This document shows, in pieces, positions 12,861 to 63,200 of a stretch of DNA of 64,000 bases (its first letter is position 1; each line of letters begins with the position of its first letter). A program made the position numbers and the translations under genes. Source of the stretch: Anthoceros angustus (lineage: Eukaryota; Plantae; Anthocerotophyta). The stretch is taken from positions 51,982 to 115,981 of the forward strand of contig VJWM01000297.1 in NCBI GenBank assembly GCA_010909165.1, in the 5' to 3' direction. The notes beneath the pieces are model-generated. The model made no database searches and was not told where the DNA came from. It saw nothing but the letters and a program-made list of their open reading frames with translations.

Positions 12861-12869
12861 GAAAGGCCT

Positions 12870-17848: not shown

Positions 17849-17849
17849 T

Positions 17850-23830: not shown

Positions 23831-23954
23831 CGCTGGTGGGTCCCTGCCCTGCGGGTCCGTCTGGAGCCCGTTCTCCCTGGGTGGGTTGAGACTGACTCTC
23901 ATCCACCCCTACCCTCACTCCCCGAGTTAGAGCCACTGGACTCGCTCCCCCCTC

Positions 23955-25055: not shown

Positions 25056-26306
25056 TTACCAAAGACCAAACCACCCTTTCTGCAGTCGCTTTGCAGGTGT
25101 GAGGCTAGGGGGAGGATCTGCGTCACTCTCTAAGTCCTCATCATCCGGCTCCTCGACAGGTTCGGGCTTGATCTCCTCAGGCTTGACTCCAAGTGCAGCA
25201 AATCTGTCAAAAATTGGACTCTGTCGCTGCAACCAGTCCTCCTGTTCTGGGTAGTCAAAAATAGGCTTGGGGCAATGAATTATCATGTGTGGTGCTGCAA
25301 GCTTTCGCAGCAACCGAAATGTCTTCCTGTCTGATGAATCCCATGTTGTTTGCTCAAGGTAGGGAATCTTCAGCTTATCTGTGACACGATAGAACTGCCT
25401 TGGCCATCCAACAACAGTGTGGCCCGTCTTGAGGTGATGGAAAAACAGTGGCCAGTCTTTCAAGTAAACTAAACTTTCTGGCACCCTGTCTTCCCACATG
25501 ATCAGCTCCTTGGGCAACCTCAAACCAGAAAATGTTTGGTGCATGAAGAAGTGATGTTGCAACTTACGCCAAGCACCTTCACAGTAGGCTATCCATGTCC
25601 AGGGCATGGCCTGGAGTCCTCTCCTCTGCAGCTCAAACAGATCACGGTGATCTGTGGGGTAGAACTCCACCCGACACCGCTCATGGTGTGTCTCTACATA
25701 CAGAAGGAACTCGCCGAGCTCCTTGAAGTTCACTGGAGGGATTCCCCTCTCAAGATTATACGCCCGCTGCAGAGAAAGATCCCACTTACATGCGCCCTCG
25801 TTATTCAAAAACTGAGGAATAGCGCGTGCTAGAGGGTGCTGCACCAGGTTGCCACACTTGCACACCTTAGGTGGCACTACCTCAAGAACAGCACCTGGAC
25901 GCTGTTCCATATGTAGCTCATAACTGTTGTGCATCCTAAGAGGGAAACCGACCTCGCCTCGATTCCGAGCCTGTGCCTCGGTACCGCTACTCCTCAGCCG
26001 CCACTTCACAACTGCTCCTCTGGTACGCCTGGGTTCTGGGGCATCTTCCCTGACCCGAGCTCGCTGTGCTTCTCGCCGTCCACGCTCAAAGCTGCGTTGG
26101 TTAGCCTCCATCTGCTCTTCAGCTGGCCGTTGCTTCCTGGGCCTTCCCCTCTTATGCTTGGGTTTGTCAGGCGCAAATATCACTGCACCTTCCTCGCTAA
26201 TTGGTGCTAGGGCTTGTGTGGTGTGCCTCTGCTTCCACATATGGTTCACCATCCGATCCATCCAACTTAGCCAAACTCTCCACACAGTCTGTAGGAGACC
26301 AAGCAC
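25056..26306 (-). CDS. 416-aa uncharacterised protein with AT-hook
   Basis: Open 1.25-kb frame; KHKRGRPRK AT-hook; Trp/aromatic-rich globular-looking region of ~230 aa; acidic C-terminus; true start may be a later ATG. Confidence 0.6.
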   Translation of the reverse strand: MLGLLQTVWRVWLSWMDRMVNHMWKQRHTTQALAPISEEGAVIFAPDKPKHKRGRPRKQRPAEEQMEANQRSFERGRREAQRARVREDAPEPRRTRGAVVKWRLRSSGTEAQARNRGEVGFPLRMHNSYELHMEQRPGAVLEVVPPKVCKCGNLVQHPLARAIPQFLNNEGACKWDLSLQRAYNLERGIPPVNFKELGEFLLYVETHHERCRVEFYPTDHRDLFELQRRGLQAMPWTWIAYCEGAWRKLQHHFFMHQTFSGLRLPKELIMWEDRVPESLVYLKDWPLFFHHLKTGHTVVGWPRQFYRVTDKLKIPYLEQTTWDSSDRKTFRLLRKLAAPHMIIHCPKPIFDYPEQEDWLQRQSPIFDRFAALGVKPEEIKPEPVEEPDDEDLESDADPPPSLTPAKRLQKGWFGLW

Positions 26307-27727
26307 TTGCTCTGTGACGGTCGAGCCCCCAGTTGGGGAAGACTCCTCTAGTTGCGGCGAAACTGGCCCTCTGGCGTCGTGCTTTCTTCCACACTGCTTG
26401 CCTTGGCATCACGGAATTCCACAGAGGCGGGCAACTCTGCAGTGCAATAGCGATTTGTGAAGAGCACTCTCCGAGAATAGCAGCCTCCTCGTGAGCTGCC
26501 TTGATGGCGCTTCTAGCCCTGGCAACAAGGAATTCTGCTGTCAAGAAATGCTCCGCACGAATTCTCCCTTTTTGCAACTCACACCTGTCATTCCTGCTCT
26601 CTTCTTCATGTACCCATTCCGACACGAGTTGAGCTGGAGTGTTACCCTCCAACTCCTGCTCAGGTACAGAAAGTACTTCTTCATCATTACTCTCAATAGA
26701 TAGAGCCATGGCTGCATGCAAACTTGTTGAATCATAGTGTTCACATAGCCAATCCCTTTCCGGGATATCCTCTAGTGCAGGTGTGAGACAAAAAATGTGA
26801 TAGCCTCTGTTGCACCTGTCACATAAGAGCATAAGCTCTTCATCCGTGGTGTAACCACATGCCTCACAGGGTAAGTCTGCTGGTGGCACCCACGTTCGAG
26901 GAACAATCCTCACATCAAGATTTGGCAAGTGATATGGAGCTAAATGTTTCATGTGCTCCTTGCACCTTCTGCCATCTCGTCCTTCGAGTTCCACTACTCC
27001 TTGCTCACCTACATTCACCACCCTGAGAATCAACATGCCCGTACTAACATCTAACATGCTAGCTGCTCTGTGTTGCAGGTAGACATAATCTCCTGGTGCG
27101 AACTTCCTGGCCTTGGGCTTCCATGAGCCCCCCCGCGTGTGAGCATACCTCAACTGGTCTGTGTGCTGTGCAATAGCAAGGTTGTCCATAGCCATGGGCA
27201 GAATCCTCTGGAATATTTTTGCTTTGGCTTGTATTTGATCTAAGCATGCATCCATATTCCTACTCCAGTCCACATGAGCTGAATACTTGTCCTACACCAC
27301 GTTGGGCAAAACTGCATTCTTTCCGAACAACAGAAAATAAGGACTGAAACTTCCCAAGGCTCCCTGCATACTGACTCCATAACCCAACACAATATAGGGA
27401 AGCAACTCATCCCAGCACTTGGGTTCCATAGTGATGCAGTACTTCCTGAGAGCATCCTTGAATGTCTGAACCAACCTCTCTGCTAAACCATCAGCTTGAG
27501 GATGATCCCGAGATGTCCTCCTGTAATCAATCAAACTTCTATCCAGCAACGTCTGCAATTCACCTCTGAATTCGTTGCCCTGATCAGTGAGCACCTCCGC
27601 ACAGCTCCCGAATCTGCTCAACACACACTGCAGAAAGGCTCTACTGGTGTAATGTGAGGTCCTCTAAGGCAGAACCGCTACCTCCACCCACTTGGAGAAG
27701 TGCTCAATCATCACCATACAGTGACGA
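26197..27727 (-). pseudogene. Ty3/gypsy integrase core and C-terminus fused to a PHD finger (stop at ~27665, frameshift at ~27280, 5' part replaced by LTR-B)
   Basis: MIEHFSKW, VLTDQGNEF, HPQADGLAERLVQTFK; then FAPGDYVYL and PHD CEAC..LLCDRCNRGYHIFCLTPALEDIPERDWLCEH. Confidence 0.9.
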
Positions 27728-29414: not shown

Positions 29415-30695
29415 TCAATGTACTATGCTATCCAAAGTAGGGAAGAACACTCCAATTTCATCGGAATAAGACTTGAAGTTATGGTCCACAAATGAAGAAA
29501 AACGAGGGAGCCACTGCCACGACCTCTGCTGAAAATCGTACACGAGAACAGCTGCGCTTGCTGATCCCCCACCTGTGAAGTACAACAAGTCCCCCTGTCC
29601 AATGCATCTAAACTCCTCAAAATTGACCTTTTGCAAAAACATCTTGCAAATCGATTTAGGCATTTTGTCCACCTCCACCCATTTCTCTTCATGTTCCTCG
29701 TCAAGCTCCCAGATGCGAATAGGCCCCTTAGAGTAGTGCAGACCTCGTTCCCAGCAGTTATCAATCCCTCCAACCATGAGGAGACGGCCATGGCGCTCCA
29801 CCAAGTGGGGCTCCACCACATACCTTGCACACAGTCCACGTAAAGACCAGAGCCATGAATGTGATACTCACCCGGCGATCCCACTACGTTACAAGCCAAG
29901 CCCATTAATGCCGCCAGCAAGCACCTCAGAGACGAGTTTAGGAGTAGAAGGTGAAGATTGTGCGGGTAGGTACCTGGGCACTGGAACTGGTAACTCCCCC
30001 CAAGTTGAGTTAGCGACATCGTATTGGATGACTCTGTTGGGCAACCTGGCCATTCCATACAGGTGGGTGCCATTCACAAACACGCCAAGCTCATCCTCGT
30101 AGCCAACAAGTCCACGGGGAAGTCTGCCACCGTATGTCCATCGGCCGGTGGCGGAGCTATAAATGTCTGTCATTCGATCCTCACAGAAGTTGCGGTCTGC
30201 AAGCACTATGGTGAATGTCCTGGAAACCTTGTCCACTGCCATGCCTGCCAGGAAAGGAGGACCCAAAGGACGCCGGTGCGGCAAGCACGGCAACTTGCAG
30301 AATGCTTTCCGACCATTGTAAATAGGGTTGCACACATAGAAGACAGAGCTATAAGAATCGATGGAGCAGAAGCAAAACAGCCCTCCTGCACTTGCGATTA
30401 GAGCGTACCTATCGTTGCTGGAGAGGAAAGGCATGAGAATCTGATGCCATCTACCCAGTGCGGGGTTGTAAGCAGCAACACCTTCACACCCTCCCACTAC
30501 AGAATGGAAGACGAACAAGGGCTGGCGAGGAGGGAGATGACTGCGCTCATGCAGGTGCAAGAAGCTGGGAGATATAATCAGTGTGTTCCAAGCTTTGCAG
30601 GTGCCTCGGAGCTGAAGTAGGTTCAAGACGGGAAGTTTGGCAAGAATCCTTTCGATAAGCTCATTCGGAAGGCGACTCCAAATCTTAGAGTCCAT
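29415..30695 (-). CDS. F-box protein with kelch-like beta-propeller C-terminus; reading-frame break at ~29820-29930 (intron or lesion)
   Basis: WSRLPNELIERILAKLP..LRGTCKAWN F-box; ASAGGLFCF, FYVCNP, GRLLMVGG, IWEL..W.EV.KMP, VLVYDF...W.WLP. Confidence 0.85.
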
Positions 30696-43438: not shown

Positions 43439-46400
43439 TTGGATCCAGGCTTGACTCCTTTGGTTCAGGTTGTGCGTATCATGGCTGCCTCCCGTGCCGC
43501 ACGTCAATCGCACTTGAAGTGCTCCGCTGGCCTCATGTCCGGCTTTTGCAAGCCAGCGTGGGTGGGCTCTGCGGATGTGCACATGGGTTGGCGTGGAGCT
43601 GCATCACTACCGGATGATCTTGACCCTCGCAGGCCTGCAGGATATGAAAGGGGCGTAACGGCGGAGACTGTGAGCCAGCTATGTCAGCAGGGGCAGCTCA
43701 CCGAGGCTGTCGAGGCCCTGGGAGTTCTGGTGCACACACGCTGTCGAATTACCCAACCTCTCTTTCATACGGTCCTGAGGAAATGTGCGGTCCAGAGGGA
43801 TCTAGTTCTGGGTCGCCGTGTGCATGCTCTCACTGTGAAAGGGGGAAATGAGTCGGACACGTTCTTGTGCAACCATATCCTGCGAATGTATGCTGCTCAT
43901 GCCAGGTTGCAGGAAGCGATGGATGTTTTTGCACTTGTGGCCAGACCAGATGCCTTTACGTGGTCTGCCATAATCTCTGCTCATGTTAAGTACGGACATG
44001 ATAAGGAGGCCATAGAACTGTATCGCCGCATGCCAACGTCAGGCATTAAGCCAGATGGGCATGTGTTTGTAGCAGCGCTTCAGGCTTGTGCAAGGGCAGC
44101 AGACTTGAAAACTGGGCAGGAGGTTCATGCTCATGTGTTGGATAGCGGGATTAAACCTGACTTGTTTCTTTGCAATACTTTGGTGGACATGTATGCGAAG
44201 TGTGGCATCTTGGACGAGGCGCAAAGGGTGTTTGACGGAATTGTTCACAAGAACGTGGTAACATGGAACACCTTGATAGCAGGGTATTCCCAGCAGAGCA
44301 TGGGACAGGAAGCCCTTGGTCTTTACAGGGCTATGCAAGAAGAAGACATTGTTACACCCGATTCAGTGACTTTTGTGAGCCTGTTGCAGGCATGTGCTAC
44401 TGTCGGTCCTGCGGCACTGGAGAAGGGAAAACAGCTTCACGCACAACTCACAGAACGAGGATTTCAAGCTGATGTGTTTGTCGCCTGCAGTTTGGTGAAC
44501 ATGTATGCTAAGTGTGGCAGCTTGGCGGATGCTCGGGAAGTTTTTGATGGGCTTTCTCGCAAAGAAGTCACGACGTGGAATGCTATGATTGCAGGGTATT
44601 CTCAGCAGGGCATGGGACAGAAAGCCCTTTCTCTCTGCACATCTATGCGAGAAGAAGGCGTCGTTGTACCCAATTCTGTGACATTTGTGTGCCTCCTTCA
44701 GGCATGTGCAAGTGTCGGCACCATGGGTCTGAAGGAGGGGAAGCAGCTTCACGCCCAAATTAGAGAACGAGGGCTTCAATCTGATGCGTGTGTGGCCAGC
44801 AGTTTGGTGAACATGTATGCAAAGTGCGGCAGCCTGGAGGATGCCCGAGGCGTGTTTGACGGACTTGCTGAAAAAAATGTAGTTACGTGGACAGCTCTGA
44901 TAGCAGGATATTCTGAGCAGGGCATGTGTCTGGAAGCCCTTTCTCTTCACAGTGCCATGCAAGAAGGCGGCATGGCTGCACCCAACCCTGTGACGTGTGT
45001 GTGCCTTCTGCAGGCATGTGCAAGTGTGGGCGCCCCAGCCTTGGAGAAGGGAAAGCAACTTCATGCACAGATGGGAGAACATGGGCTTCAGGCTGATGTA
45101 TCTGTAGCCAACAGTTTGGTGAACATGTATGCAAAGTGTGGCAGTCTAGAAGATGCTCAGCGTGTGTTTGATGGACTTCCTCATAAAAATATGGTGACGT
45201 GGAATGCGATGATTGCAGGATATTCTCAGCAGGGCAGGGGTCAGGAAGCCCTTTGTCTTCACTTTGCTATGCAACAAGAAGGCATCAGTGCTCCGGACCC
45301 TGTGACCTTTGTGTCCCTCCTGCAGGCATGTGCAAGTGTGGGTAACCCAGCACTGGAGAAGGGGAAGCAGCTTCATGCACAAATTAGAGAACGGGAACTC
45401 CGAGCTGATGTCTTTGTAGCCAGCAGTTTGGTTAACATGTATGCAAAGTGCGGCAGCCTAGAGGATGCTCGGGCAGTGTTCGACAGACTTGAACAGAAAA
45501 ATGTGGTGACATGGAGTTCGATGATAGCTGGCTATTCCCAGCAGGGCATGGGGCAGGAAGCCCTTGCTCTTTACAAGGCTATGCAAGAAGACGGTCTTGT
45601 CGCACCCAATAGTGTGACATTTGTGTGCCTTCTGCAGGCATGTGCAAATTTAGCTGCCTTGCATCTGGGAAGGCAGTTGCATGTGCAGATAAAAGAACAA
45701 GGGCTGCAAGCTGATGCCCTTGTAGCCAGCGGTTTGATAAACATGTATGGGAAGTCTGGCAGCATGGTTGATGCACAACTGGTGTTCAAGGCATTGCCTG
45801 AAAGAGACGTTGTCACCTGGAATGCACTGATTTCAGGCTACACCCGGCAAGGCGATAGTCAAATGGTCTTTGATTTGTTTGACAGAATGAGAGAGGATGG
45901 CATACAGCCAGTCGGCATCACTTTCCTTTGTCTGCTCACAGTATGCAGTCATTCGGGTCTAGTGAACAAGGGGCAAGAGATATTTGAGGCCATGCGCAGA
46001 CACCATGGAATCACTCCTACAGTAGAGCACTACTCATGCATGGTGGACCTTCTGGGGCGTGCAGGCCGGGTGGAGGAGGCACTAACTGTGGGAAGGACAA
46101 TGCCTGTACTGCCTACTGTTGCGGTTTGGCACAACCTATTGGGAGCTTGTCGAAAGTGGAGCAATGTGGAGGTGGGGCGCCATGCTTTTGATGAGGCGGT
46201 CCAGATGGACAGTAAAGATCCTGCAGCATATGTCTCCATGTCAAACATATACATCGGTGCCCAGATGTGGGAGCAGGCAGAGGAGATGCAAGTGAGAAGA
46301 AAAGTATGCGGGGCATGGAAGCAGCCTGGCCAGAGCTGGTGGACAGACATGGAGGGACTGGTGCATAGTTTTTTGGTTGGGGATAGGATTCATCCCGAGA

Positions 46401-46519
46401 GTGGAGGCATATATGCAAGACTGCAACAACTGTTTTCCAAAATAAAAAACGAAAGCTGTGTGCTAGAGTCGTCAATTGATTATGGGAAGGAGCATCAGCT
46501 GATTGAACACCTAGGGTGA
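43439..46519 (+). CDS. PLS-class PPR protein with E1/E2 and WW-type PG box, truncated DYW (organellar RNA-editing factor-like), intronless
   Basis: Repeating P-L-S triplets (VTWNAMIAGYSQQG / VTFVCLLQACASVG / LVNMYAKCGSLEDA), EHYSCMVDLLGRAG, LLGACRKWSN, AYVSMSNIY, KQPGQSWWTD..VHSFLVGD.IHP; start ATG uncertain. Confidence 0.95.
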   Translation: MDPGLTPLVQVVRIMAASRAARQSHLKCSAGLMSGFCKPAWVGSADVHMGWRGAASLPDDLDPRRPAGYERGVTAETVSQLCQQGQLTEAVEALGVLVHTRCRITQPLFHTVLRKCAVQRDLVLGRRVHALTVKGGNESDTFLCNHILRMYAAHARLQEAMDVFALVARPDAFTWSAIISAHVKYGHDKEAIELYRRMPTSGIKPDGHVFVAALQACARAADLKTGQEVHAHVLDSGIKPDLFLCNTLVDMYAKCGILDEAQRVFDGIVHKNVVTWNTLIAGYSQQSMGQEALGLYRAMQEEDIVTPDSVTFVSLLQACATVGPAALEKGKQLHAQLTERGFQADVFVACSLVNMYAKCGSLADAREVFDGLSRKEVTTWNAMIAGYSQQGMGQKALSLCTSMREEGVVVPNSVTFVCLLQACASVGTMGLKEGKQLHAQIRERGLQSDACVASSLVNMYAKCGSLEDARGVFDGLAEKNVVTWTALIAGYSEQGMCLEALSLHSAMQEGGMAAPNPVTCVCLLQACASVGAPALEKGKQLHAQMGEHGLQADVSVANSLVNMYAKCGSLEDAQRVFDGLPHKNMVTWNAMIAGYSQQGRGQEALCLHFAMQQEGISAPDPVTFVSLLQACASVGNPALEKGKQLHAQIRERELRADVFVASSLVNMYAKCGSLEDARAVFDRLEQKNVVTWSSMIAGYSQQGMGQEALALYKAMQEDGLVAPNSVTFVCLLQACANLAALHLGRQLHVQIKEQGLQADALVASGLINMYGKSGSMVDAQLVFKALPERDVVTWNALISGYTRQGDSQMVFDLFDRMREDGIQPVGITFLCLLTVCSHSGLVNKGQEIFEAMRRHHGITPTVEHYSCMVDLLGRAGRVEEALTVGRTMPVLPTVAVWHNLLGACRKWSNVEVGRHAFDEAVQMDSKDPAAYVSMSNIYIGAQMWEQAEEMQVRRKVCGAWKQPGQSWWTDMEGLVHSFLVGDRIHPESGGIYARLQQLFSKIKNESCVLESSIDYGKEHQLIEHLG

Positions 46520-49111: not shown

Positions 49112-52100
49112 TTATCGTGAGGGCTTGTATGTGAGTCCACCATTGCATCCACGGGCGAATCCTCTACAAGTGCCAAATTCGCATCGCTCCATCTCCACGT
49201 CAAAGCTATCATTCGCACCTAAAACTCTGGTCTTCATTGATATCATTTTGGTGTAAATCGTCGTTTGTGGATTGACACCATCTGACATCAATGTCTGTCC
49301 ATCCATCGTCCATAAGCTCCGGTTGTCGTCTTTAACCTCTTCGCACTCAATGCCACGACTTGGGCTTTCAAGGTCTTTCTCACTACAAACCTCTTTGGCC
49401 CAGGCGAGATGGTCCCCTTGATGCGGCTCAAAAGTCAGCTCCTCATGCATCGGGCAAGACATCAACCGCAGTGTATCGTGGGCAATGTAACTGCGCATCT
49501 CAAGTCCGCCTCTATTGCACGATTCGGCCACGGCGGCTAGTGTCGTAGTCCTGAGCATGCATCAATAACCCGGTCTCCCTCCTTGGAGAATGTCCTCACG
49601 AGTTTCATCATAAGACCCAATGGTCTGGTATGGGCACACTACCAACTTGTCATGAGAGTAAAACTGCTTTCGACGATGAGGGTGTCCAATAACGATCTTC
49701 CATTGTTGAAGGTCCTGCATCACATTTGGCATCATGGCAGCCTCCTTGAACATCCATCTTTCACACCCCATCCAAGCATAGCGTATTCCATCCTCAAATC
49801 CTCCTCGTCGTTGTTCATGTTAGTCTTATCCCAAATGAATGACACCAAGCCGCCTTTGGCACACCACTTCCATAGCCTCCCTTGCCGTATGGGCTTCTTC
49901 AACACCATGCATGGCGATAATTGAATCGTCATTTTCCGTTTTCTCGAAACTTTGAAACACAAGACCCATCATGGATAAATCCATTCGTTTGTCCATTGGC
50001 CCGATGTCAAATCCACGGGAACATCCATGACAAGAAGGGTGTATTTCCTTCCCTCAAAACCCACGCATGTCGAGCGTTGCGGGCTTCCACAATCTTGGAC
50101 TGTTTCTCGATCGGAACATTGAATATCCGGAGTCCTTCTTGCAAGTCCTTGTCCAAAGCCGCTGCTCATTCTCTAAGCCCTTCCAATTATTGATCTCGAA
50201 AATAAAATGCGGAGTCGTCGGGCGGCTTTGTCAAGACCTCCACGTCCTTGATTCTTGCCAAAAAACAACTGTTAGAATGCGGCCGGCTCAAGCACCTCAC
50301 AACTACTAAGCGGTGGGGCGCGGCGGCGGCTCCTCGGCGATCGCGGTGATCCGCCGCGCGGCGCCCTGCCCCGCGGTGGGGCAGCGGTGGGGGCGCCCGG
50401 CTCTCCGCGATGCGAGAAGGCGGCCGGGCGTGGCGCCCCTGCTACGGGGCGGGGTGGGGGCGGCCGGCGGTGGCCCTGCACTCGATGGCGGCGGCGGGGC
50501 GCCGGCGGCCGGCGGCCGGCGGCCGGCGAGCGGATGGACATGGCCGGCGGCTGAAGTGAACATGGAAAGAAGGTCCGTGCATCACATTTGGCATCATGGC
50601 GTACATCGTCCTTGAACATCCATCTTTCACACCCCATCCAAGCATAGCGTATTCCACGGTCTCAAATCCTCCTCATCGTTGTTCATGTTAGTCTTATCCC
50701 AAATGAATGACACCAAGCCGCCTTTGGCACACCACTTCCATAGCCTCCCTTACCGTATGGGCTTCTTCAACACCATGCATGGCGATAATTGAATCGTCAT
50801 TTTCCGTTTTCTCGAAACTTTGGAAACCTGACACCCCATCATGGATAAATCCATTCGTTTGTCCATTGGCCCGATGTCAAATCCACGGGAACATCCATGA
50901 CAAGAAGGGTGTATTTCCTTCCCTCAAAAACCACGCATGTCGAGCGTTGCGGGCTTCCGTCTTGGACTGTTTCTCGATCGGAACATTGAATATGGAGTCC
51001 TTCTTGCAAGTCCTTGTCCAAAGCCGCTGCTCATTCTCTAGGCCCTTCCAATTATTGATCTCGAAAATAAAATGCGGAGTCGTCGGGCGGCTTTGTCAAG
51101 ACCTCCACGTCCTTGATTCTTGCCAAAAAACAACTTTGTTAGAATGGCTCAAGCACCTCACAACTACTAAGCGGTGGGGCGCGGCGGCGGCTCCTCGGCG
51201 ATCGCGGTGATCCGCCGCGCGGCGCCCTGCCCCGCGGTGGGGCAGCGGTGGGGGCGCCCGGCTCTCCGCGATGCGAGAAGGCGGCCGGGCGTGGCGCCCC
51301 TGCTACGGGGCGGGGTGGGGGCGGCCGGCGGTGGCCCTGCACTCGATGGCGGCGGCGGGGCGCCGGCGGCCGGCGGCCGGCGGCCGGCGAGCGGATGGAC
51401 ATGGCCGGCGGCTGAAGTGAACATGGAAAGAAGGTGCAGGAAAATGGCTTACCTTTCCCGCAAATGCCGTTTGGAATCGCGAGCATTTCATCGATTGAGT
51501 CTTTGGGGATACTCTGCCGAACCTCTTCAAAAGAAGAGCAACCAAGGTGTTTTGCCATCGCCACTTGAATAATATGGAATTTCTTCGAAGAGATATATCG
51601 TCATCCATTCCTTTCGTGTCAATGAGACCGCCAACACTTTCTCTCAGAAGCGGTGATAAGTATCTGCCCACACTCCCCATTGGAATCCCTTGAAATGATT
51701 TCCAAGGCTTTGCAAGCATATCTTTTGGCTTCACATAGTCTATTTTGTTGGCCTCCTCGGCCACTTTCCGCTTCACCTTGCTCTTCTTGCTTGTCCCTGC
51801 TATCACATGCTTCTTCCGCCTGCAACTCCCCGCTTCCCACTTGGTAAATATCTTGTCTACATTTTCCCATACCCTACCCTCTTGTTTCGCGATGCATAAA
51901 ATGTGGGTCATGTTGTCAACCTTGTTCTGTTTATAAACATCATCTTCGCGTGCTTCATCATCCTCAATAAGCCCCAACACCTTGTACAGGTTGAATTTCC
52001 ATGTCATGGTCATCTGCATATCATCCCGTTTCGCAATAATCAATTCATCACGCAAATACCTCACCTGCTCTATAAAATTCATCTTCCGGCGCTTGTCGGA

Positions 52101-52550
52101 CATAATATTATGGTCTGTGGCGAGGACTCGCATCTCCTGTACGTTGAGACCACAGTACACATGAGCCTCCATCCGAAACCGCTTTTGCGGAGATGTCGCA
52201 AGATGCTTCATTGCCGCATAAGTGTGGTTTCCTCCAAGGACTCCATGACATATTTTTTGGCCCCGAATCGCCACTAGTTTTTCCATGTCATCACACCAGG
52301 ATCAATCATACATAATAAAGGCAAAACGCCTCTTCAATCCTCCCTTTTTGATATAACACGCCAAATAATTGGCCCATGCTTCATCCACCCTGCGTATCTG
52401 TGCATCAGGCGTAAGGTGCGATGCCGGTCGAAGGTTCTCCAATTTCACCAGCACTGTTTCCAATACTACCTTCTTCGTGATATGTCGCTTCCCGCGTGGG
52501 GTCTTCATCCGGATAGCTTCCGCAATCCTCTCCTCGGTCTGTTGTCACAT
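49112..52550 (-). pseudogene. ParB-domain + beta-class N4/N6 DNA methyltransferase fusion gene, frameshifted and internally duplicated
   Basis: ParB-like VKLENLRP..QIRRVDEAWANYLACYIKKGG...VLGGNHTYAAMKHL; MTase motif IV-like YTLLVMDVP (50017-50025, 50887-50895); reconstructed CPYQ(K)PLGLMMKLVRTFSKEGDRVIDACSG.TTTLAAVAESCNRGGLEM (49490-49640). Confidence 0.8.
49715..51433. repeat. ~860-bp tandem duplication inside the methyltransferase gene, each unit containing a ~270-bp very GC-rich segment
   Basis: 49715-50572 ~ 50573-51433; GC block 50305-50570 ~ 51165-51430. Confidence 0.9.
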
Positions 52551-53439
52551 GAACAAGGGGAATGTCACCCACATTTTCCACCCTCTGCAGTTTGTTCCCT
52601 TTCCTCTTTGCTTTTGCCTTAGGATGGTCCTCTCCGCTATTCCTCCGCCTCCGATCTCCTTCAAAAGCAGATCCCGCCTTCCTTTCCCTTAGTCCCTACG
52701 CTCTCCAGTCCCATGTTGTGTCAGGAGGGGCGCGGCCGGCGCCCTCGCCTCCCTCATGCGCCTGGAGCCTTGAGGCCCCCTCCTGGCTGAGGGCGGCCAC
52801 CGGCCCTAGTTCCTCCTCCACCTTCCAAGACCCTTCGCACGTCGGTCGCCGCCGGCCCCGACTAGCAGCTGATGAAAAGTGACCGGGCTTCCCACTTCCA
52901 CTAACCCTGAGGTTTCATAATCGCACACCGGACTTGGGTTCACATAGCTCCACCGTTTTCAGAACCCAAGTTCACCAACACCAATTCTCACGGACCCTCC
53001 AAATGTCCATATTTGGCCATTGGGCAATAAATTTCCGCCTGACCTTGGGCGCCATGCTCCTGCGAAACCTCATTCGCATGGCGCCAGGCTACCAATAGCT
53101 ATTCTCGAATTTCCAACTTAGTGGTCCCAGGGTTCCTACCTCCCGGACTCATGAGCTTCCACGCCACAGGCTCGCCTTTCTAGGCGCCTTTGGTGCCTTC
53201 CGAGATTTCTTAAGGTTATATCACAGAAATTCCCCTACCCGGCCCCGGCTTCCGCGACCACTTCCTCCTTCCGCGACTGCTTCTTCCTTCCGCAACCGCC
53301 CTTCCCGTTCGCCTACCGTCTTGAACAAAGCTACTAGTACACCCCAATGACCACACACTAATCAACTACCGCCCGGTAGGTTTGACCACTAGCCTATGGC
53401 CTTGATTACCGCCAAATATGAGGAACCCCTCCCCATATA

Positions 53440-53620
53440 TAGGCCCTCTATTAAATATTCCGATGCAAAGGCCAAGGAGTATCGAGTTCATAGTCCAAGG
53501 ACCGATTATTATTTAACCCGAACAACCCCAAAACTCATAGGCCAAGGACACTTTCTACTATAAATATTCCTTCATCGACAACCTCTTATTGACACGAACT
53601 TAGCAAAAACAAAAATCACT
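53440..53620. promoter_or_regulatory. Promoter-like segment homologous to 21130-21335, upstream of the ParB-MTase gene
   Basis: GTCCAAGGAC 53493-53502, GGCCAAGGA 53540-53548, TATAAAT 53559-53565, then AAAAACAAAAA leader. Confidence 0.55.
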
Positions 53621-53689
53621 CAAAGACACAATCCAACAGGAGTTTCCAAATACCGGATCGTTTACGGCGACAATCAGCGGTAACCACCA

Positions 53690-56600
53690 AGTCCTCCTCT
53701 CCTTCCTCTCTTGACCCCGGTGGGTCCACCTCTGTGGGACCACCGGGGGTTGCTCACTGGCGGTGGTGGGGACCCCTCCTCCCGAGCCGGACCTTGGGGT
53801 CCGCCGCTCCAGTCAAACCTCAAGATCCGGTCTTGACTCTAGAGTCCGGACCTCGGGGTCCGGCCTCGTCTCCGGAGTCCGGACTTCAGGGTCCGGTCTC
53901 GTTTCCGGAGTCCGGACTTCAGGGTCCGGTCTCGTTTCCGGAGTCCGGACTTCAGGGTCCGGTCTTGTTTCCGGAGTCCGGACTTCAGGGTCCGGACTCG
54001 CGGGTTCTCGGACTTCTCTGCCTCGAGAACTTCCCAGGGGACCGTCCTCATCCTCCGGAACTTTCCTTCTAGGACCCCGGCCCTCCTCCCTTCCTTCCAC
54101 GGTGGGTGCGGCGGACTTAACTCATGCCCCGTGGTGTCGCAGGTGTCCTCCTCTGGCGCTCCCCTCCCGTTCTGCTCTCAGCGGTCCCAAGGTCTCGGTG
54201 GCGTCATCCCGGGGCCTTCATCTCTTCCCCTCCCTCGATCCATCCGGGTCCGTGAACTTGCGGGGTGGCTCGGGACCTCCAGGGCCTTGAGGAGCTCCGT
54301 GGTAGTAGGCAAAGTCGAATCAACTTGTTGAATTGCCTCCTCCACATGAGCCCGAGCACCAGTCTCCTCCTCCAGAGGTGCTATGGTAGTTGGGTGTGCT
54401 GGCCGGCTGCTGGTTCCATCTCCGCCGCAAGGCCGCCAACTAGAGTCGGGTGGAGTCTCTTGAGGCCGCCAAGTACGCTCCGACACTTCCTGCAGCCTCC
54501 GTGCCGCCCGTGCTCCTCCTCCTCCGCCGTCTGTAGTTCGCCGCCACCGCCATGGAGCGACGCTCCTTTGCTTCTCTCAGAATTGACCAGCAGCCTCAGC
54601 CTCTCTCGAGCCCTGTCTCCACCATCCATCCTTGCGAGGGCCACCATCTCCTTCCAGCGGTCCAAGCACCTCCGCCCGGCCCCGGCTTCCTCCTGATCCT
54701 TCTCCAACTCGGCGATGTCCATCTCCTTGGTTCGCGTCAACTCTCCTCCCCTCCAACAGAGGAGTCGCTCGATCTCTTGCTCGTGGTCCATGATTCTCCT
54801 TGGAGAATTCCATGTCGTCCACTGTCCGGAGCCGCAGCCTCTAGGGTCTCCTGCGATCCTCCAGCCTCCCGGCGCCGCCTCGCCTTGCACCCAGGTCGAG
54901 ATCCTCCATCTCCGGTACCGCCTCCTTTCTTCTTCATGGCTTGCTGCTTGCTTCTGCCACCGCTTCCGCTCGTTGGCTGGCTGCGGCTAGGGTCTCCTTG
55001 CGATCCTCCGGCTCCCGGCGCGCTCCTGCTCCTTGCAGTGCGGAGATCCTCCATCTCTGGTGCGGCCTCCCTTTCTTCTTCATGGCTTGCCGTGCTTGCC
55101 GCCACACCCTTTCGCCCCGGGTTGGCGCGGCTACTCCGCCGTCTCCCTCCACGGTTCGGTCCCACCGTAATGGTCTTTGTCCGACTTCGCTGGCCTGGCC
55201 TCAAGGCCCCTTCACCTGAGCCTCCCATGCTTGGTGTTGCTCAGCCATCTCGGCCGGGTCCTTAGCCCTTTCCGCCCGGCTTCCTCCGCCTCCTTCCGGC
55301 CGCCCTCCGCTTGCAAAGGTCCTCCGCCTTGCTCGTGGTCCATGATTCTCCTTGGAGAATTCCATGTCGTTCCACCGTGTCACGGAGCTGCGGCTCTAGG
55401 GTCTCCTGCGATCCTCCGGCTCCTGGCGCGCTCCTCTGCTCCTTGCAGTGGGAGATCCTCCATCTCACAGTGCGGCCTCCCTTTCTTCTTCATGGCTTGC
55501 CGTGCCGCCACGCACCGCTGCTCGCCCCGGGTTGGGCGGCTACTCCCGTCCCTCCACGGTTCGGTCCCACCGTAATGGTCTTTGTCCAGGCTCCGCGCGG
55601 CCTCGGCTTCCCGCGCCCCATGCAGGGCCTCCCATGCTTGGTGTTGCTCAGCCATCTCGGCCGGGTCCTTAGCCCTTTCACTTTGCCTTGGGCTTCCTCC
55701 GCCTCCTTGGGGCCGCTTTCCTCCGTTTGCAAAGGTCCTCCGCCTTTGCTCGTGCCTCTGTGCTTGTTTCACTGCTCACATATCAAGGATCCTCGGCCCC
55801 CTTGTTGGCGCGACTCGCCTCCCACCGCGCCTCCTCCACATGAGCCCGAGCACCAGTCTCCTCCTCCAGAGGTGCTATGGTAGTTGGGTGTGCTGGCCGG
55901 CTGCTGGTTCCATCTCCGTCGCAAGGCCCGCCAACTAGAGTCGGGTGGAGTCTCTTGAGGCCGCCAAGGCTGCCTTCGACACTTCCTGCAGCCTCTGGTG
56001 CTGCTCCGCGTGCTCCTCCTCCCGCCCGTCGGCGTGGTTCGGCCTCGCCATGGAGCGGCGTTCTTTTCCGTTGGACCAGGCACGCTCCTCTCTCAGAGCC
56101 CTGTCTCCACCATCCATCCTTGCGATCCTCCATCTCCTTCCAGCGGTCCGGCTCATGCCCGGCTTCCTCAGGATCCTTCTCCAACTCGGCGATGTCCATC
56201 TCCTTGGTTCGCGTCAACTCTCCTCCCCCCTCCAACAGAGCTGGAGTCGCTCGATCTCTTGCTCGTGGTCCATGATTCTCCCTTGGAGAATTCCATGTCG
56301 TTCCACCGTGTCCTGGAGCTGCAGCTCTAGGGTCTCCTTGCGATCCTCCAGCTCCTGGCGCCGCTCCTCTGCTCCTTGCAACTGTGCCCAGAGATCCTCC
56401 ATCTCCTGGGTACTGGCCTCCCTTTCTTCTTCATGGCTTGCCCGTGCTTGCCGCCACCCTTTGCTCGCCCCGGGTTGGCGCGGCTACTCCGCCGTCTCCC
56501 TCCACGGTTCGGTCCCACCGGTAATGGTCTGTCCGACAGCGGCCTCGGCTTCCGCCCCTTCACCGAGCCTCCCATGCTTGGTGTTGCTCACCGAGCCATC

Positions 56601-57750
56601 TCGGCCGGGTCCTTAGCCCTTTCACACCGCCGGGCTTCCTCCGCCTCCTTGGGGCCGCTTTCCTCCGCTTGCAAAGGTCCTCCGCCTTTGCTCGTGCCTC
56701 TGTGCTTGTTTATTTGTTCACATGGCTGATCTACCCGGTCTTGTTAGGCGACCTCGCCTCCCGACTCCGCCGCCTGCTTCTCCTCCTCAATTCTTGCGAG
56801 GGTCTCCGCCTTCCTCTTGGCCGCAGGCCGCCTCCACTGACCACAGGCTCCACCATCCGCCTTCCGGGTGGCTTCCACCTCGGGTCTTCCGCTCGCCATT
56901 CCGCAAAGACCCTGAGCACGCCGTCCATAATATCTCGCGAGTACCCTCCGGTTTCTTCCACCGCGTCACTGGAGAAATCTCAGTCCGGGCCATGCCTGCA
57001 CCGCCCGCTAAGGACCGCCACATCATATCCCGGGAGTGACGCCATCCTGACTCGGACCCAATCGAGACCCTCGAGGTCTTGATTGTTCCGGGTCCCGAGT
57101 TCCACCTCCTTGGCCCTTTTGGTCGCTAGCTCGGCCTTGTGCACAGTCGCCATGACCCTCCTGCGGTTGCGACGATCGCTTGTGTGATTTCCGCACACAC
57201 GCCCTGAATGCATTCATTCACGTAACCGCACAATGAACAATGCTCATCTTAGAGGCAAGACAGTGTGCATAAGCAGTGGAAGCGGAATTGGATAAGGTTT
57301 ATATTGCTCCCGCCCATTCCTCAAAACAATTTGCAAAGCCCGGGTTCGCATTTCTTGATCACAAGATTGTTGAACCCCGATCTCGAACGCCTGTACATGG
57401 ACCCGTGGCACCGATCAAATTTTGGGGCCTTGTAATGCACAAGAAGCGTACTCACGGGATCCCCATTGACATGTCCAATGTTGCCCACCACTAGCCACCC
57501 GCCTTTGCATTGATTTGGCAGTGTATCCTTGTAACCCATAATCCACAGCTTGTACAACGGAGTCCAAAACATGCTCTCGTCTTCTGGTTCCGGATCCTGA
57601 ACAACCATCCAATCCTTCTCCAAGATCTTCACTGCATCCATCTGTGCTCCAAGGCGTCGAATGTAAACTGTCTCCTTGAAGCTGTATGGCAAAGGAATAG
57701 GAGCCACCCTCTTCCCACCCTTCTCCCCCTTCTCTCCATGGCCTCCTGAT
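53690..57750 (-). mobile_element. Family A accessory ORF region with 4-5 scrambled copies of the coiled-coil segment; Cys-rich and unknown domains at the 5' end
   Basis: Repeated GAEERRQELEDRKETLELQLQDTVERHGILQG, TKEMDIAELEKDQEE, AMKKKG frames; ARAHVEEAIQQVDS at 54.3 kb. Confidence 0.65.
53780..54000 (-). repeat. 33-bp hairpin array (PDPEVRTPETR)
   Basis: Unit GAGTCCGGACTTCAGGGTCCGGTCTCGTTTCCG, ~5 copies. Confidence 0.92.
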
Positions 57751-59679
57751 TTTGTTGTAGCCTCACGAGCCCAAGCCTTGACCGAGTGCCCCGCTGCAGA
57801 AGCCGCCCCGCCCGCACTCCGTCGCTAGCATGTCCTCCCGTGACAAAGGTCTTCTCGCGAAATCGCCGCGATGCGCCCTGCCAACTGCTGCGCTAGCTGG
57901 CGCTTTCAGAGACAGTTCGGGATCCGGATTCGCCGTCGCTCGATCCTTCTTGCTTCTTCCCATCGCCATCACCTTCAATTCAGCACAAACCACCCTGTAT
58001 GGGCCTTCCTTGTATGCACCGCGAGCCGCGAATTCCACAACAACAAGGCGTCAATTGATGCACAACATTACAAACACGAAGTGAGATAACCACGAGCACC
58101 GGCCGGTCCGTCCCCGCCAATTTCACTGGCGTCGTTGATGCAATCAAGGGGTTAGAGATACGCTCGTGACTCACATGTCTCGCCCGAGAAGACCGACACT
58201 TCCCTCGCACAAAGCCGCCAATTGCTCGCCGCTTGTGTGAGGGGTCGTCAGGCCCACTCCGGTTTTGTTTGCCCCTCAAACTTGCTATTTGAAGCGCCCG
58301 ACCGTAACTCGTTCATCTTTCCACTGCTTAATCGCTTTAATTTAGGTTTCTCGTTACTCCAACTAGCCGATGGTTCGAACCTCTGGCATTATTAACGCCC
58401 GCCATCTTGTACATACAAATTTTAACGGTACCGCTTTTTCCCATTGCGGTTGGGTTTATTTTAATTACTAAACATAAAGACTTTCCTGCTTGCACCTCCA
58501 AGCATTAGAACTTAACGACGTTCTTGAAGAATGGTTTATATGGTTGGTGATCATAACTATCAAACGGCCTCCTGTGAAGGCTTAGACATTCCAGCGTATG
58601 TCGTTCGAATGAACCTTGCCTTCTTCATTTCCTCCACTATCGTCCAACCTCAAGACGCCCAACAAAATGCTTCACGCCACTCATCTGTGTAGAGGGCTGC
58701 CGATGTAAGCCACAGTTTTGTACAATCGAACGCCGCTGCCCTGGATGCGCGTTGCGAGGTTCGGTATACTCATTCATGCTTTGATTGTGCAGTGGTTTAC
58801 TTGGATGGTGAGGGTCAATCCAATATGAAAGACAACTTCCAAAAGCACCCGGATTTGAGGAGAAGCGGACTCTGAATGCCCACCGGCCGTCCGATGTCAC
58901 CACAAGACATCACCAGCTCTCCACGCGCCACTACGGGTCGCGAAGGTGTGCTTAATCACTGGATTCTAATGGAGGCCGACTTTGTGAATTTTATCCTCGA
59001 TCAGTCGGAGCCTTTGCCATACCAATGCTCCAAGCATCGGAGGTGGTCGACACGGCCTTGGCCCCTACCATTCCAGGTGCCATGGACACCAAGAAATCTT
59101 AACCCAGAGTGCTCGAGGATCCCCATGCAAACAACGGTGTGAGCAAGCAACACCGCTAGAAACCAAGGCACTCCCAAGTTTGGGCTCAATGCGTGGAGGC
59201 GGTTGTTCATCGCAGCGGGAGTCGCCACGCACCATCAAAGCGAAGACGTGAATAAATCGAATGAGGAGGAGACGATTTCGAGGCTTGAGGTCGACAACCG
59301 CCATCTTATCACCCCAAACCGCCGAGTGAGACTTTGGTGTCTGCAGAAACTACGAGTGTCTGGTGCCGTAAGAGGCTGCGGGAGTCTTAATTGGCCTAAA
59401 GCCATGGCAATATCCCGAGCCTGAGAGGTCACCGGGATTACCCAATCGATTCCCAGGCGTAATAGATATAGAGTCCTAGATAGGCTAACACTAGCCAACC
59501 AATTACATGTGCGTGGAATGGAGCCACGTGCACGGACTCAACAACAAAGATCAAGAGTTGTAAAGGAACATTCAACAATTGTTGAATTATTACAGGAGCT
59601 TGATCTTACATTCACGCTTTCCAAGACAGAACAATCAAGCGCGCCCCGGTACAATCCACTGATGGAAATGACCACCCAC

Positions 59680-60300
59680 GCTTCCGTGGGAGGGAAAACC
59701 CCGGCTTCCAGGCTTCCCCTCAGCGCCCACACTTATCCCTGTGGATTCTGGGTTTCGTCCATGAGACTTGTGTGAAAGATCGTCTTGAAACAATCACCTG
59801 GGTGACACACCTACCTCCGCCTTCTAAACAATCAAGGCGCCTACTCTCTCCATGCTAGCTTGCACCACTGCATTTGCTCCGAAAATCACCAATCCTCGAC
59901 TTACAACGACACAATTTGGTGCAGTCTATCCTTTAGCGGAAAGTCTATCGCGAGCAGAGAGCCTCAGCCCTACGTTCGTCCCTACTACTAGAACCAATCT
60001 CCTCCACTGTGGCGCCCTCTTGCAAATTTGGATTGCGTCCTTTAGGCGAGGCGCACGCCCAGTTCACTTCCACCCACTACCTATAATCCTCACCCTATCT
60101 CTTCCTCTTCCTCCTATTCTAACCTCGGTTCCCACGGGCTTCGCGCAAAAACCGCTGGCCTGGGTCGCCACACCAAAGGATTCTTCCTTGGGCCGGTTCG
60201 CTATGAGTTTGACACCACGGATAGCGAGAACCTCCGGTCTTTCTGTAGTCTACCCTCTGCCGAGAGTTCCCCAGGCATTGCCCACACACCCAAAGCAAAG
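59680..60300. repeat. LTR-like family B copy (partial)
   Basis: Colinear with 27728-28330. Confidence 0.65.
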
Positions 60301-61240: not shown

Positions 61241-62054
61241 TTACACAAAATTAGAAATTTGGAGTGCATATAGGCGGCATTGTGAACAAAGAGGTCAGCG
61301 ATACATGACCTACGCCTGGTTCTTGAAGCTATGGAAAGGGCACTTCAGCAGGTAAAGATTCCAAAGTCTAACGATTCTCTACTTGCTTTCGCTTCTGCTT
61401 ATTGGATTGAAAACAACTATCACGAAATACAATCTCAAAGGTTGATCAAGGTAAGTTACATTGTTTTCCTTATCCCTTGTTTTCCAGCATACAGAGGGTG
61501 GTTGACCCTGTGGGCCAAACCCTCAATGGCAGTGTTATATCTAGTATGTCAATGTGCCCCCCCGCTTCTGGGGACAGGTCCCCAAGTGGGCGCCGGCTGA
61601 CCGGCGCCCACCAAATGTCTCTGACCATAGGTCCATAGCATTATCTAAGGAGGGTTCCCCTGGTCATGAGGGCGCCGGTCGGCCGGCGCCCTGTTCGGGT
61701 AACCCATGCATGTGCCTATCACATTGCTTGGGCCCGGCATCTTAGAAGGCACCGCTATACCATGTCGACCTTGCGGGAATGAGGTCGGTCGCAGGCGCCG
61801 GTGGGCACAACCCCCAACGCCAGCTTGACCGACCTTCCGGGCTTGAAATGCGACAAATGTGTTCCACCCATTATATCCTTTAAGGTCGGTCGTAGGGTGG
61901 AGGGTGAGGAAGGTGAAGTTAGCGGTGTCCATGACATACATTGCCACATCTCGGAGGTGATCTTGGCAACGTTGATTCAACATCATACTATGTTTTTATC
62001 TTGTAAGTTGTCAACTTTAAAGGGACTCACATACTATGGTGTGAATATGTTATG

Positions 62055-62520
62055 TGCAGAGAAATATCAAACAGATTGGGCCGCCCACCACGGCGACTTT
62101 TAGCAGAGCGTGCGAAGATGACAAAACACCGGAGCAAGAGTTATGTTGAACCACATAAGTATATGCTACTATGTATCGATGGCATGGACGAGAAGACAGA
62201 GCTACACATGTTGAGGTGGCCCAAAAACCTAGGCGAGGAATGTCATTTCGTTCACGTGGTGGTGCATGATCCACAACTACACCCACAAAGCCACGGCGTT
62301 TTTACTCGCCAACCTCTGATGCCAATTTGACTATCGGCGTGATTCAAGATGTCATCCACAACTATGATGGTGTGCTGCCCAAAGTTTTGTATTTGCAACT
62401 TGACAATACATGTCGGAGAACAAGAATCAGCTATTGTTTGCATATCCCGAACATGCTCGTTGATATGGCACGTTCGAAAAAGTGAAGGTGGGATTCCTCT
62501 TGGTTGGTCATCATGGAAGA
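62055..62520 (+). pseudogene. Second, more decayed copy of the Sola-like transposase
   Basis: AERAKMTKHRSKSYVEPHKYMLLCIDGMD; GVLPKVLYLQLDN; KKVKVGFLLVGH; colinear with 21554-22030. Confidence 0.8.
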
Positions 62521-62559
62521 CCACATGTGCACTAACCCCGCCTCCCAAGTGTCAGGATG

Positions 62560-63200
62560 GTGATTTTTTTTGTTTTGGATGTGTTAGAATAGCAAAGTGC
62601 TTTGAGAATCGTCTGAGTCGTCTTTTTACGGAATGGTCCTTGGCCCTTGGAGATAATAATAATTTTTCGATCCTTAGGTTTGACCTGGAGGGTAGAGTCC
62701 TTGGGTATTGGGAATTTTAGAATAAAAGGTGTCTATATATGCTAGGGATGCTCACAATATGCAGCTTGAGTAGTCAAGTAGGGGGAGGTGGCTAGTTCCA
62801 CCACGGTGGAGAACGGAGCACAGACTGGGGGTTTACAACCCTAGTGGCGGGAGGGGCTGCAGTCGGTCGGGCGCAGCGAGAGAAGGCACCCGGCAGCAGT
62901 CGCGACTTTCCAGGGAGGGGCCGTCGGGCCGGGCTGCGGCAAGAAAGGAAGCGACCCTTCCTTGAGGCCAAATCTACATCTCGCTTGCGGAGGAAGGCGC
63001 AGCGGTCGAGGAGCAGGCGGGCGGAGGAGAGAGAAATCAGGCGCCGCAACGTCCGCGGGAAGGCGCGAGGGAACTCAGGCAGTGAGTGAGGTGGAGGTTG
63101 TGGGGAAAATCGCTCGGATCGGGCGAGGCCGAGGCGAGAGGGTCCCCATGGGCCGTGGGCGGGCGGCTCGCGGAGGCGGCGGCGCTGATTTTAGAGTCGC
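62560..63200 (+). mobile_element. Inverted homolog of the ORF-A promoter and 5' region (20.7-21.3 kb)
   Basis: Reverse complement contains CCAAGGGCCAAGGAC, TATATAGACACCTTTTATTCTAAAA, GGAACTAGC.ACCTCCCC and AAAACAAAAAAAA as at 21.07-21.33 kb. Confidence 0.7.

Follow-up and report, generated by a model that had tools for sequence, protein, structure and literature searches.

In the brown alga Ectocarpus, the element Sola1-1_Ec32 carries an accessory gene on the strand opposite to its cut-and-paste transposase, and the authors propose that the gene product binds and marks its own element (Genome Biol 2025, PMC12477816). In the red alga Bostrychia, the transposon-borne accessory genes PAG2 and PAG3 of Plavaka elements encode PF01555 and ParB-like domains, with tandem inverted-repeat arrays beside the ParB-like gene (bioRxiv 10.1101/2025.02.11.637652). 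ParB-linked methylases derived from phages were described by Iyer et al. (PMC4738411), and Marchantia DN4MT1 has a TSPPY motif and no reported ParB domain (bioRxiv 10.1101/2021.02.12.428880). We examined a 64,000-nt stretch of Anthoceros angustus DNA (GCA_010909165.1, contig VJWM01000297.1, positions 51,982 to 115,981 of the forward strand; termed the window, with all coordinates given within it), where a preliminary description made from the letters by themselves had drawn attention to block 49112-52550 as a frameshifted gene for a ParB plus amino-methyltransferase protein within transposon DNA. This feature is very probably a pseudogenised, internally duplicated member of a gene family, found in streptophytes, whose protein combines a ParB/sulfiredoxin (Srx)-like domain with a beta-class methyltransferase (PF01555, M.RsrI/CcrM-like), and which in this genome is part of a DUF7869-type cut-and-paste element.

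The gene remnant runs on the minus strand from 52508 to about 49400 and includes a ParB/sulfiredoxin-like N-terminal region, a basic linker, a candidate GT-AG intron and a beta-class amino-methyltransferase part. The N-terminal part (51450-52286, minus strand), searched by phmmer against 1.84 billion representative sequences, gave 24 matches at E≤1e-3, the best at 1.4e-23; the N-terminal domains from Riccia, Ginkgo and contig BFEA01000570 were matched at E 3.8e-6 to 5.9e-4 by phmmer, and at about 1e-9 to 1e-10 by tblastn. A family hidden Markov model (HMM), prepared from the methyltransferase parts of relatives, was searched against all 2544 six-frame pieces of the window; its sole match was at 49540-49638 (E=1e-5, 22.4 bits without stitching), and the next best piece was at E=7.8. 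The read-through with its pieces joined by X scored 42.1 bits against family HMM positions 136-195, where the best of 2000 within-piece shuffles scored 7.5; the aligned stretch begins at ...VVCPYQ, takes in motif I and ends at the conserved N of the following motif. The other methyltransferase motifs are colinear with the family profile, none being significant singly. Pfam searches of seven window pieces returned N6_N4_Mtase only, for the 33-aa motif I piece (E=0.1), at 12.9 bits and thus below the PF01555 gathering score of 26.7 bits, and gave no match to ParBc (PF02195) at E≤1. The preliminary description had looked to both profiles; of the two, the methyltransferase is significant with the family HMM and sub-cutoff with Pfam, and ParBc was not recovered. 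A tblastn search of the window with the relatives at E≤0.01 found the ParB part only, the methyltransferase surfacing only with the family HMM. A homologue search with the whole 327-aa open reading frame (ORF) gave no match, probably because of a length limit of the search and the junk C-terminus of this ORF.

By its motif order the methyltransferase is of the beta class (PF01555-type), in that motif IV (YTLLVMDVPVD, 50043-50011) precedes motif I (VIDACSG/TTT, 49569-49540), as it does in the relatives. The motif order, the phmmer family and the family HMM are together in agreement with the earlier proposal of a ParB-like plus beta-class methyltransferase fusion with motif IV before motif I. 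The motif I region, CPYQ/RPLGL...VIDACSG/TTTLAA, is recognisable, with two frame changes and without the K and the second G-S. The tetrapeptide (D/N/S)-P-P-(Y/F/W) was not found in the window copy, where motif IV reads D-V-P-V in both duplicate units of the gene (see below); the relatives have DIPH (Ginkgo), DLPY and DFPY (P0008), DAPY (P0017) and DIPY (Riccia, in an exon of locus L002 near 12171). The Riccia gene model omits this motif IV exon (EYTLAIADIPYGF).

When the family was compared by sequence with solved enzymes in the PDB, the best matches were M.RsrI (5e-7), M.MboIIA (7e-7) and CcrM (5e-6); the N4-cytosine enzymes gave 0.09-0.27, the rotifer N4CMT chain being at E=0.09. M.RsrI, M.MboIIA and CcrM share with the family the order of motif IV before motif I and the S-adenosylmethionine-binding region YQKP...(D)xFxGSGTT; whereas, they have DPPY in place of D-x-P-Y/H (DVPV in the window) and do not have the N-terminal ParB-like domain of the family. 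Judged from these sequences, an N6-adenine target is more likely than an N4-cytosine target for intact family members. The designation of the gene as a writer of N6-methyladenine (6mA) or N4-methylcytosine (4mC) is unproven, the family motif IV being D-x-P-Y/H, and DVPV here, rather than DPPY or SPPY. MpDN4MT1a/b and rotifer N4CMT, to which the preliminary description had linked the gene, resemble the family as bacterial-type amino-methyltransferases in eukaryotic nuclear genomes, but DN4MT1 carries TSPPY and the N4-cytosine enzymes match the family far more weakly than the N6-adenine enzymes. Because DN4MT1 has TSPPY and no reported ParB domain, the supposed kinship with 4mC writers is unsupported.

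The frame breaks deprive the window ORF of its N-terminal strands, for which reason the Riccia relative P0022 was modelled in its place. The AlphaFold model of P0022 residues 135-400, built with the family alignment, had a pLDDT of 86.9, and in a Foldseek comparison with the PDB ranks 1-28 were all ParB, Noc, KorB or Spo0J (E 7.7e-5 to 2.6e-2, probability 0.90-1.00), with sulfiredoxin next. The model of the window ORF itself matched no fold significantly (Foldseek E>2; Spo0J at VIA Z 4.2 over 102 residues), and the ParB-like fold anticipated for the Anthoceros sequence was consequently seen with the relative and not with the window's own model. From the model, a ParB/Srx fold plus a helical DNA-binding region is predicted for the family; the label is extended to the window copy by homology, since P0022 matches the window by tblastn (E=5e-9 over 200 residues). 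Sequence methods gave less: there was no Pfam match to ParBc at E≤1 among 20 relatives, DUF6551 alone being reported in 2 members (best E=0.007), and a family-profile sequence search of the PDB found no ParB.

Bacterial ParB, Noc and KorB, which are CTP-dependent DNA clamps, and sulfiredoxin resemble the modelled N-terminal plus helical region of the Riccia relative in fold, and the family in how its conserved positions are arranged, G-x-x-(R/H)...A and (E/D)-x-N...R. In place of the arginine-rich GERRxRA box of CTP-binding ParB the family appears, by pattern, to have VLGGNHS, and the window VLGGNHT. The sulfiredoxin motif is GGCHR, and the family's GGNH(S/T) is nearer to this than to GERRxRA. 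With GERRxRA replaced by GGNH(S/T), CTP binding and a CTP-driven clamp in the family are doubtful.

Three relatives score above the Pfam N6_N4_Mtase cutoff, i.e., P0010 (670 aa, Ginkgo biloba Gb_37443) at 65.7 bits, P0022 (689 aa, Riccia sorocarpa R1sor_010796) at 28.8 bits, and P0008 (1825 aa with two ParB plus methyltransferase units, from contig BFEA01000570 of GCA_003427395.1, locus L003) at 27.3 bits; R1sor_003872 of Riccia sorocarpa and the Ginkgo paralogs of Gb_37443 are further members. From its accession we take GCA_003427395.1 to be Chara braunii. The window copy is 22-28% identical to the Riccia, Ginkgo and BFEA01000570 members, and 35% identical to P0001, its closest relative, which is a 291-aa fragment that comes from an assembly of public reads. 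The Riccia, Ginkgo and BFEA01000570 genes have in common with the window copy the colinear series GGNH, DHN, D-x-P-Y/H, W.K(P/T)N and YQKP...GSGTT, and an intron position after F..F.G; they differ from it in having long open frames and PF01555 above cutoff, whereas the window copy is decayed. At L003 (BFEA01000570.1, 10001-39538) two consecutive ParB-like plus methyltransferase units extend over 29.5 kb within the one 1825-aa model, which probably represents two adjacent copies merged by the gene caller.

The features of the window copy and its surroundings are listed in Table 1. The frame that starts with the ATG at 52508 contains QIRRVDEAWANYL at 52400-52362 and, if read on, meets a stop at 52304-52302. 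Its portion 52448-52362 is 48% identical over 29 aa (tblastx) to L001, the contig of the closest relative, and the tblastn matches of P0002, P0019 and P0022 extend across it; the shifted segment GVLPLLCMIDPGV is 73% identical to L001 over 11 aa (52330-52298). The 327-codon ORF (52286-51303, minus strand) holds VLGGNHTYAAMKHL (52241-52200), LATDHNIMSDKRRKMNFIEQ and the lysine-rich linker, and the main ParB-like region within it reads from VLGGNHTYAAMKHL through LATDHN..R..MNFIEQ and the KK-rich linker (RRKKHVIAGTSKKSKVKRKVAEEANK, 51821-51744) to ...RFQTAFAGK; the stretch 51585-51514 (KKFHIIQVAMAKHLGCSSFEEVRQ) is readable only in another frame. The N-terminal half of the methyltransferase is in three pieces: 50127-49972, with DIQCSD (50127-50110) ahead of YTLLVMDVPVD and a stop at its end; 49957-49832, a helical stretch also ended by a stop; and 49833-49753, which reads WDKTNMNN..EYAMLGW where the family pattern is W.KPN...E..V.GY. 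The C-terminal half passes from ...RRKQFYSHDKLVVCPYQ (49750-49625) to RPLGLMMKLVRTFSKEGDRVIDACSG (49626-49549) and TTTLAAVAESCNRGGLE... (from 49549), so that CPYQ adjoins RPLGLMMKLVRTFSKEGDRVIDACSG across a frame break and TTTLAAVAES begins at 49549. Every motif quoted in the preliminary description was found on the minus strand where it had been placed; the duplication of YTLLVMDVPVD, the frameshifted ParB exon and the candidate intron were not mentioned there.

Table 1. Features of the ParB-methyltransferase gene copy and of the neighbouring transposon and retroelement-like DNA in the window.
Feature	Position	Strand	Basis
Start codon and first ParB-like segment, MKTPRGKRH ... QIRRVDEAWANYLACYIKKGG	52338..52508	-	tblastx, tblastn
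GVLPLLCMIDPGV, in shifted frame	52292..52330	-	counterpart of the family's conserved LPLLVLVDP strand (family consensus)
Main ParB/Srx-like region, helical (helix-turn-helix-like) region and basic linker	51453..52286	-	phmmer; tblastn to relatives; family alignment; L001 comparison
Candidate intron 1	51119..51452	-	GT 51452-51451, branch-like TTCTAAC, T-run, AG 51120-51119
Upstream duplicate unit: most of intron 1 and a copy of the motif IV exon (YTLLVMDVPVD at 50913-50881)	50569..51435	-	sequence self-alignment
Downstream duplicate unit: copy of the motif IV exon (YTLLVMDVPVD at 50043-50011)	49708..50574	-	sequence self-alignment
Methyltransferase N-terminal half, three frames	49753..50127	-	pattern-level match, colinear with family HMM and with Chara (presumed) and Riccia sequences
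Methyltransferase C-terminal half (motif X/I/II region), three frames	49436..49750	-	family HMM; Pfam; P0008, P0017 and P0022 matches at the same place
Divergent promoter-like module (promoter role inferred)	53418..53615		homology to region upstream of DUF7869 ORF
Repeat-unit tail cutting the element on the transposase side	53663..54122	+	homology to 23783-24107; Tandem Repeats Finder (TRF); three-way alignment
Degraded retroelement-like DNA between the gene and the nearest transposase remnant	54122..60217		colinear with 24.4-28.3 kb (integrase-PHD ORF region)
DUF7869-type transposase fragment	62020..62511	+	blastn to 21515-22026 (74% identity, E=2e-89); tblastn; tblastx

A GTAAG directly follows ...RFQTAFAGK in the 327-codon ORF and opens candidate intron 1, which encloses a 290-nt G+C-rich block (51146-51435) and whose acceptor has a second copy at 50255-50254 in the downstream duplicate unit. 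The gene models of P0001, P0007, P0014 and P0016 end shortly past the corresponding F..F.G position, in a "VS..." read-through, and a Riccia exon ends at this place; the window copy would therefore have an intron at a position common to its relatives. YTLLVMDVPVD is present twice because an 865-bp tandem duplication (49708-50574 / 50569-51435, 96% identical, joined at a GCA..ACCTTC microhomology) sits within the gene. The alignment of the two units has 881 columns, 36 of them differing. The G+C-rich intron block is 100% identical between units (51146-51435 compared with 50285-50574), and all 36 differing columns lie in the remaining 580 nt or so, representing about 12 indel events and about 8 substitutions; gene conversion, uneven mutation or assembly noise are possible causes of this uneven distribution.

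The ParB exon has four frame changes (near 52335, 52290, 51590 and 51512), backed by the L001 comparison, and the methyltransferase part has five further ones, of which two (49626 and 49549) have good support and the others are pattern-based. In total there are at least nine frame changes, with several segment-ending stops, which agrees with the earlier statement that the copy is frameshifted; the aromatic residue of motif IV is lost in both duplicate units (DVPV). As assembled, the window copy is unable to encode the protein. It could be argued that the living plant has an intact gene encoding a spliced protein, and that the frame changes, and perhaps the duplication, represent indel or collapse errors of the assembly. 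The ratio of indels to substitutions between the duplicate units is unusual, and the frame changes 52335/52290 and 51590/51512 are in compensating pairs within 40-110 nt. The search for sequencing runs turned up one low-coverage DNA run and no RNA run. In the DNA run the matching contigs were short, of high depth, and from paralogous copies rather than from the window locus; among them is a contig with one additional base at 49626, i.e., at a predicted frame break. The short high-depth contigs indicate that the gene family is multi-copy, so that checking of reads at the frameshifts informs on the family and is silent on the window locus, and the extra base belongs to a relative. Stops occur inside segments too and DVPV is in both duplicate units; a 3-kb pentatricopeptide repeat (PPR) ORF 3 kb away is unbroken, which implies a low general rate of indel error. 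We consider an intact gene improbable.

The module upstream of the gene connects it to a transposase. It contains three (G/T)CCAAGGA motifs (at 53472, 53495 and 53542), a rightward TATAAA, and a leftward CTATATATGG directed towards the ParB-methyltransferase gene. Its local alignment with 21114-21328, the region upstream of a DUF7869 ORF (21614-22330, plus strand; Pfam E=2e-48) that itself lies next to a CCAAGGA/TATA module, scored 40, compared with a mean of 12.5 (sd 2.0, maximum 20) for shuffles, and in a three-way alignment it aligns also with the reverse complement of 62560-62830. Judged by its sequence, the module resembles what lies between two genes arranged head-to-head. The transposase fragment at 62020-62511, 9.5 kb from the ParB-methyltransferase gene, is on the strand expected for the head-to-head partner, and the 62-kb region also matches 20997-21381 in reverse (blastn). 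The module copy at 62514-62863 is inverted relative to the adjoining DUF7869 fragment, which indicates rearrangement. In Riccia locus L002 the two genes are found in the arrangement that the module suggests, with a ParB-methyltransferase gene (10001-13195, plus strand) head-to-head with a DUF7869 gene (4215-8109, minus strand). Given the common module and this Riccia pair, the assignment of the window copy to a transposon-associated family is supported by sequence comparison, and the earlier claim that the gene is transposon-borne stands at the level of the family.

Homology to the transposase-side sequence ends near 53660, where the repeat-unit tail begins. The tail contains a 33-bp array with six GTCCGGAC palindromes (53844-53990) and the unit end GGGTGCGGCGGACTTAACT (54104-54122); this unit-end motif occurs only at 24386 and 54104, as direct copies, and no inverted copy of it was found. 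Beyond it, tblastx gave the colinear pairs 24635-24804/54311-54448, 26483-26524/56681-56722 and 27804-28278/59749-60217. The copy at 24.4-28.3 kb includes an ORF with a PHD finger by Pfam (26197-27273, minus strand); that at 54.1-60.2 kb is much more degraded, with G+C-rich tandem duplications at 54.3-56.7 kb. The simplest reading, to which we give about an even chance, is that a retroelement-like insertion broke up an old two-gene element, which was afterwards rearranged, the alternative being an internal deletion.

Alternatively, the copy could be a stranded gene, once domesticated by the host, that decayed beside the PPR gene outside any transposon remnant. No transposase directly adjoins it, no terminal inverted repeats were found, and the flanks of L003 and of L004 (Riccia) are without DUF7869. 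The upstream module is nonetheless that of two DUF7869 fragments in the window, in head-to-head orientation, and past the retroelement-like block there is a DUF7869 fragment on the strand to be expected; a domesticated origin is in our estimate slightly less probable still than an intact gene. Bacterial or phage contamination, or very recent horizontal transfer, would suit the prevalence of ParB-methyltransferase fusions in phages and prophages (Iyer et al., PMC4738411), but we regard it as next to impossible, since the closest relatives come from eukaryotes (Riccia, Ginkgo and the GCA_003427395.1 contig), the GT-AG intron position is common to relatives, a plant PPR gene and plant repeats flank the segment on one contig, and the duplication and decay indicate long residence. 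A chance outcome of frame stitching, to which the Pfam value of E=0.1 taken by itself and the inflation of scores by family-guided stitching might be thought to point, has a negligible likelihood and is refuted by the unstitched searches (phmmer 1.4e-23; family HMM E=1e-5 with nothing else below E=7).

Several points weigh against the view that the feature is a decayed member of a transposon-borne ParB-methyltransferase family. For the first half of the methyltransferase, motif IV included, the assignment has pattern and colinearity as its only support. The ParB label comes from the modelled structure of a relative, with ParBc found by Pfam neither in the window nor in the 20 relatives and no ParB in the profile search of the PDB. 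A search for terminal inverted repeats at 46.5-64 kb found no convincing inverted pair that brackets the gene, and no target site duplication was found; of three foreign loci inspected, two (L003 and L004) have flanks without DUF7869. The frame changes are those of the assembly, the read contigs found being paralogous copies, and the indel-dominated differences between the duplicate units could mean assembly noise.

In the original layout of the element, the ParB-methyltransferase gene would have been head-to-head with the DUF7869 transposase, with a short divergent promoter module in common; in the window copy, the transposase side appears to be occupied by some 8 kb of retroelement-like DNA, the 0.5-kb transposase remnant being 9.5 kb off. 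In intact members the ParB-like part may bind element-specific palindromes, and may thereby direct the methyltransferase to the DNA of that same element. The window copy itself is a fossil and has no mechanism. The Riccia element at L002 is studded with a 16-bp perfect palindrome, TGTATGCGCGCATACA, which supports the palindrome-binding, self-marking idea for the family. An array of TGTATGCGCGCATACA with a 42-bp period is within the L002 intron (11650-11776), at the same intron position as candidate intron 1 of the window. The span bearing TGTATGCGCGCATACA in L002 (Riccia sorocarpa CM100795.1) is 3498-13545; the adjacent second DUF7869 element, at 18064-22101, has a different palindrome, TCCATGAG.CTCATGGA. 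The intact land-plant relatives might then be active self-marking systems, in which a ParB-like domain without a CTP box, parS-like palindromes and a D-x-P-Y/H methyltransferase would place 6mA (or 4mC) with a shielding or regulatory effect on the element; we regard this as possible but on balance unlikely. In a weaker variant of the self-marking reading, the frame breaks would be assembly errors and the window copy itself would be expressed.

At the window locus the palindrome GCCGGCATGCCGGC is absent. GTCCGGAC is present in the window in 27 copies (1.2 expected), nearly all within 29-33-bp tandem arrays, often as GAGTCCGGAC, at 13877-14189, 15284-15490, 16582-16743, 23964-24239 and 53842-54000. 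The arrays close a repeat unit of about 1.2 kb, which may or may not be an LTR, with retroelement-like DNA following at two places. The arrays were considered as the element's own ParB sites, and this was dropped on finding that the array at 53.7-54.1 kb continues into the integrase-PHD-colinear retroelement DNA; from their sequence context they seem to belong to a neighbouring retroelement-like repeat.

The PPR ORF (43439-46519, plus strand; 1026 aa) is unbroken and of the PLS class with E and E+ motifs, and its distance of 3 kb from the gene supports a setting in plant nuclear DNA, in line with the plant transposon block of the preliminary description. It is of the RNA-editing-factor type and intronless; transposon debris surrounds it, and TRF finds an internal periodicity of 312 bp. 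An ORF at 29889-30695 (minus strand) encodes an F-box (Pfam E=1.6e-10) with a weak At3g26010-like beta-propeller match, and probably represents the whole or a fragment of a host gene. A tandem duplication of about 970 bp (17149-19081; 96% identity, A+T-rich with 37% G+C) lies immediately to the left of the DUF7869 promoter module near 21 kb. A complete element should carry its ParB-methyltransferase gene at this place, and there is no such gene there.

The fusion and its transposon setting are already published (Ectocarpus, 2025; related Bostrychia genes, 2025). Compared by published description, Sola1-1_Ec32 has the same gene pairing and the same head-to-head arrangement as the family at Riccia L002; it differs from the window copy, which is in a land-plant host, is broken, duplicated and apart from its transposase remnant. 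The transposase fragments of the window are assigned by Pfam to DUF7869, and a literature search found no paper mentioning that name. PAG2 and PAG3 differ from the family in having the domains in separate proteins (PF01555 with SET; ParB with a 2OG oxygenase) and in belonging to another transposon superfamily. The presentation of the gene as a discovery in another non-seed plant lineage therefore does not hold, the pairing having been published for Ectocarpus (PMC12477816) and relatives being present in the seed plant Ginkgo. What the locus contributes is the decayed copy, the module common with the transposase, the conserved intron position and a further non-canonical motif IV; the D-x-P-Y/H found family-wide argues against a plain equation with known 6mA or 4mC writers.

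Since the window copy does nothing, it matters only as a relic, showing that a transposon family with a ParB-like/amino-methyltransferase gene lived, and decays, in a land-plant genome. At the level of the family the question, which publications on brown and red algae have already posed, is whether transposons of eukaryotes bring with them a bacterial-type DNA-marking enzyme for their own palindromes. If the self-marking reading is true, the window locus would represent one relic among many that such a system has left in a land-plant genome.

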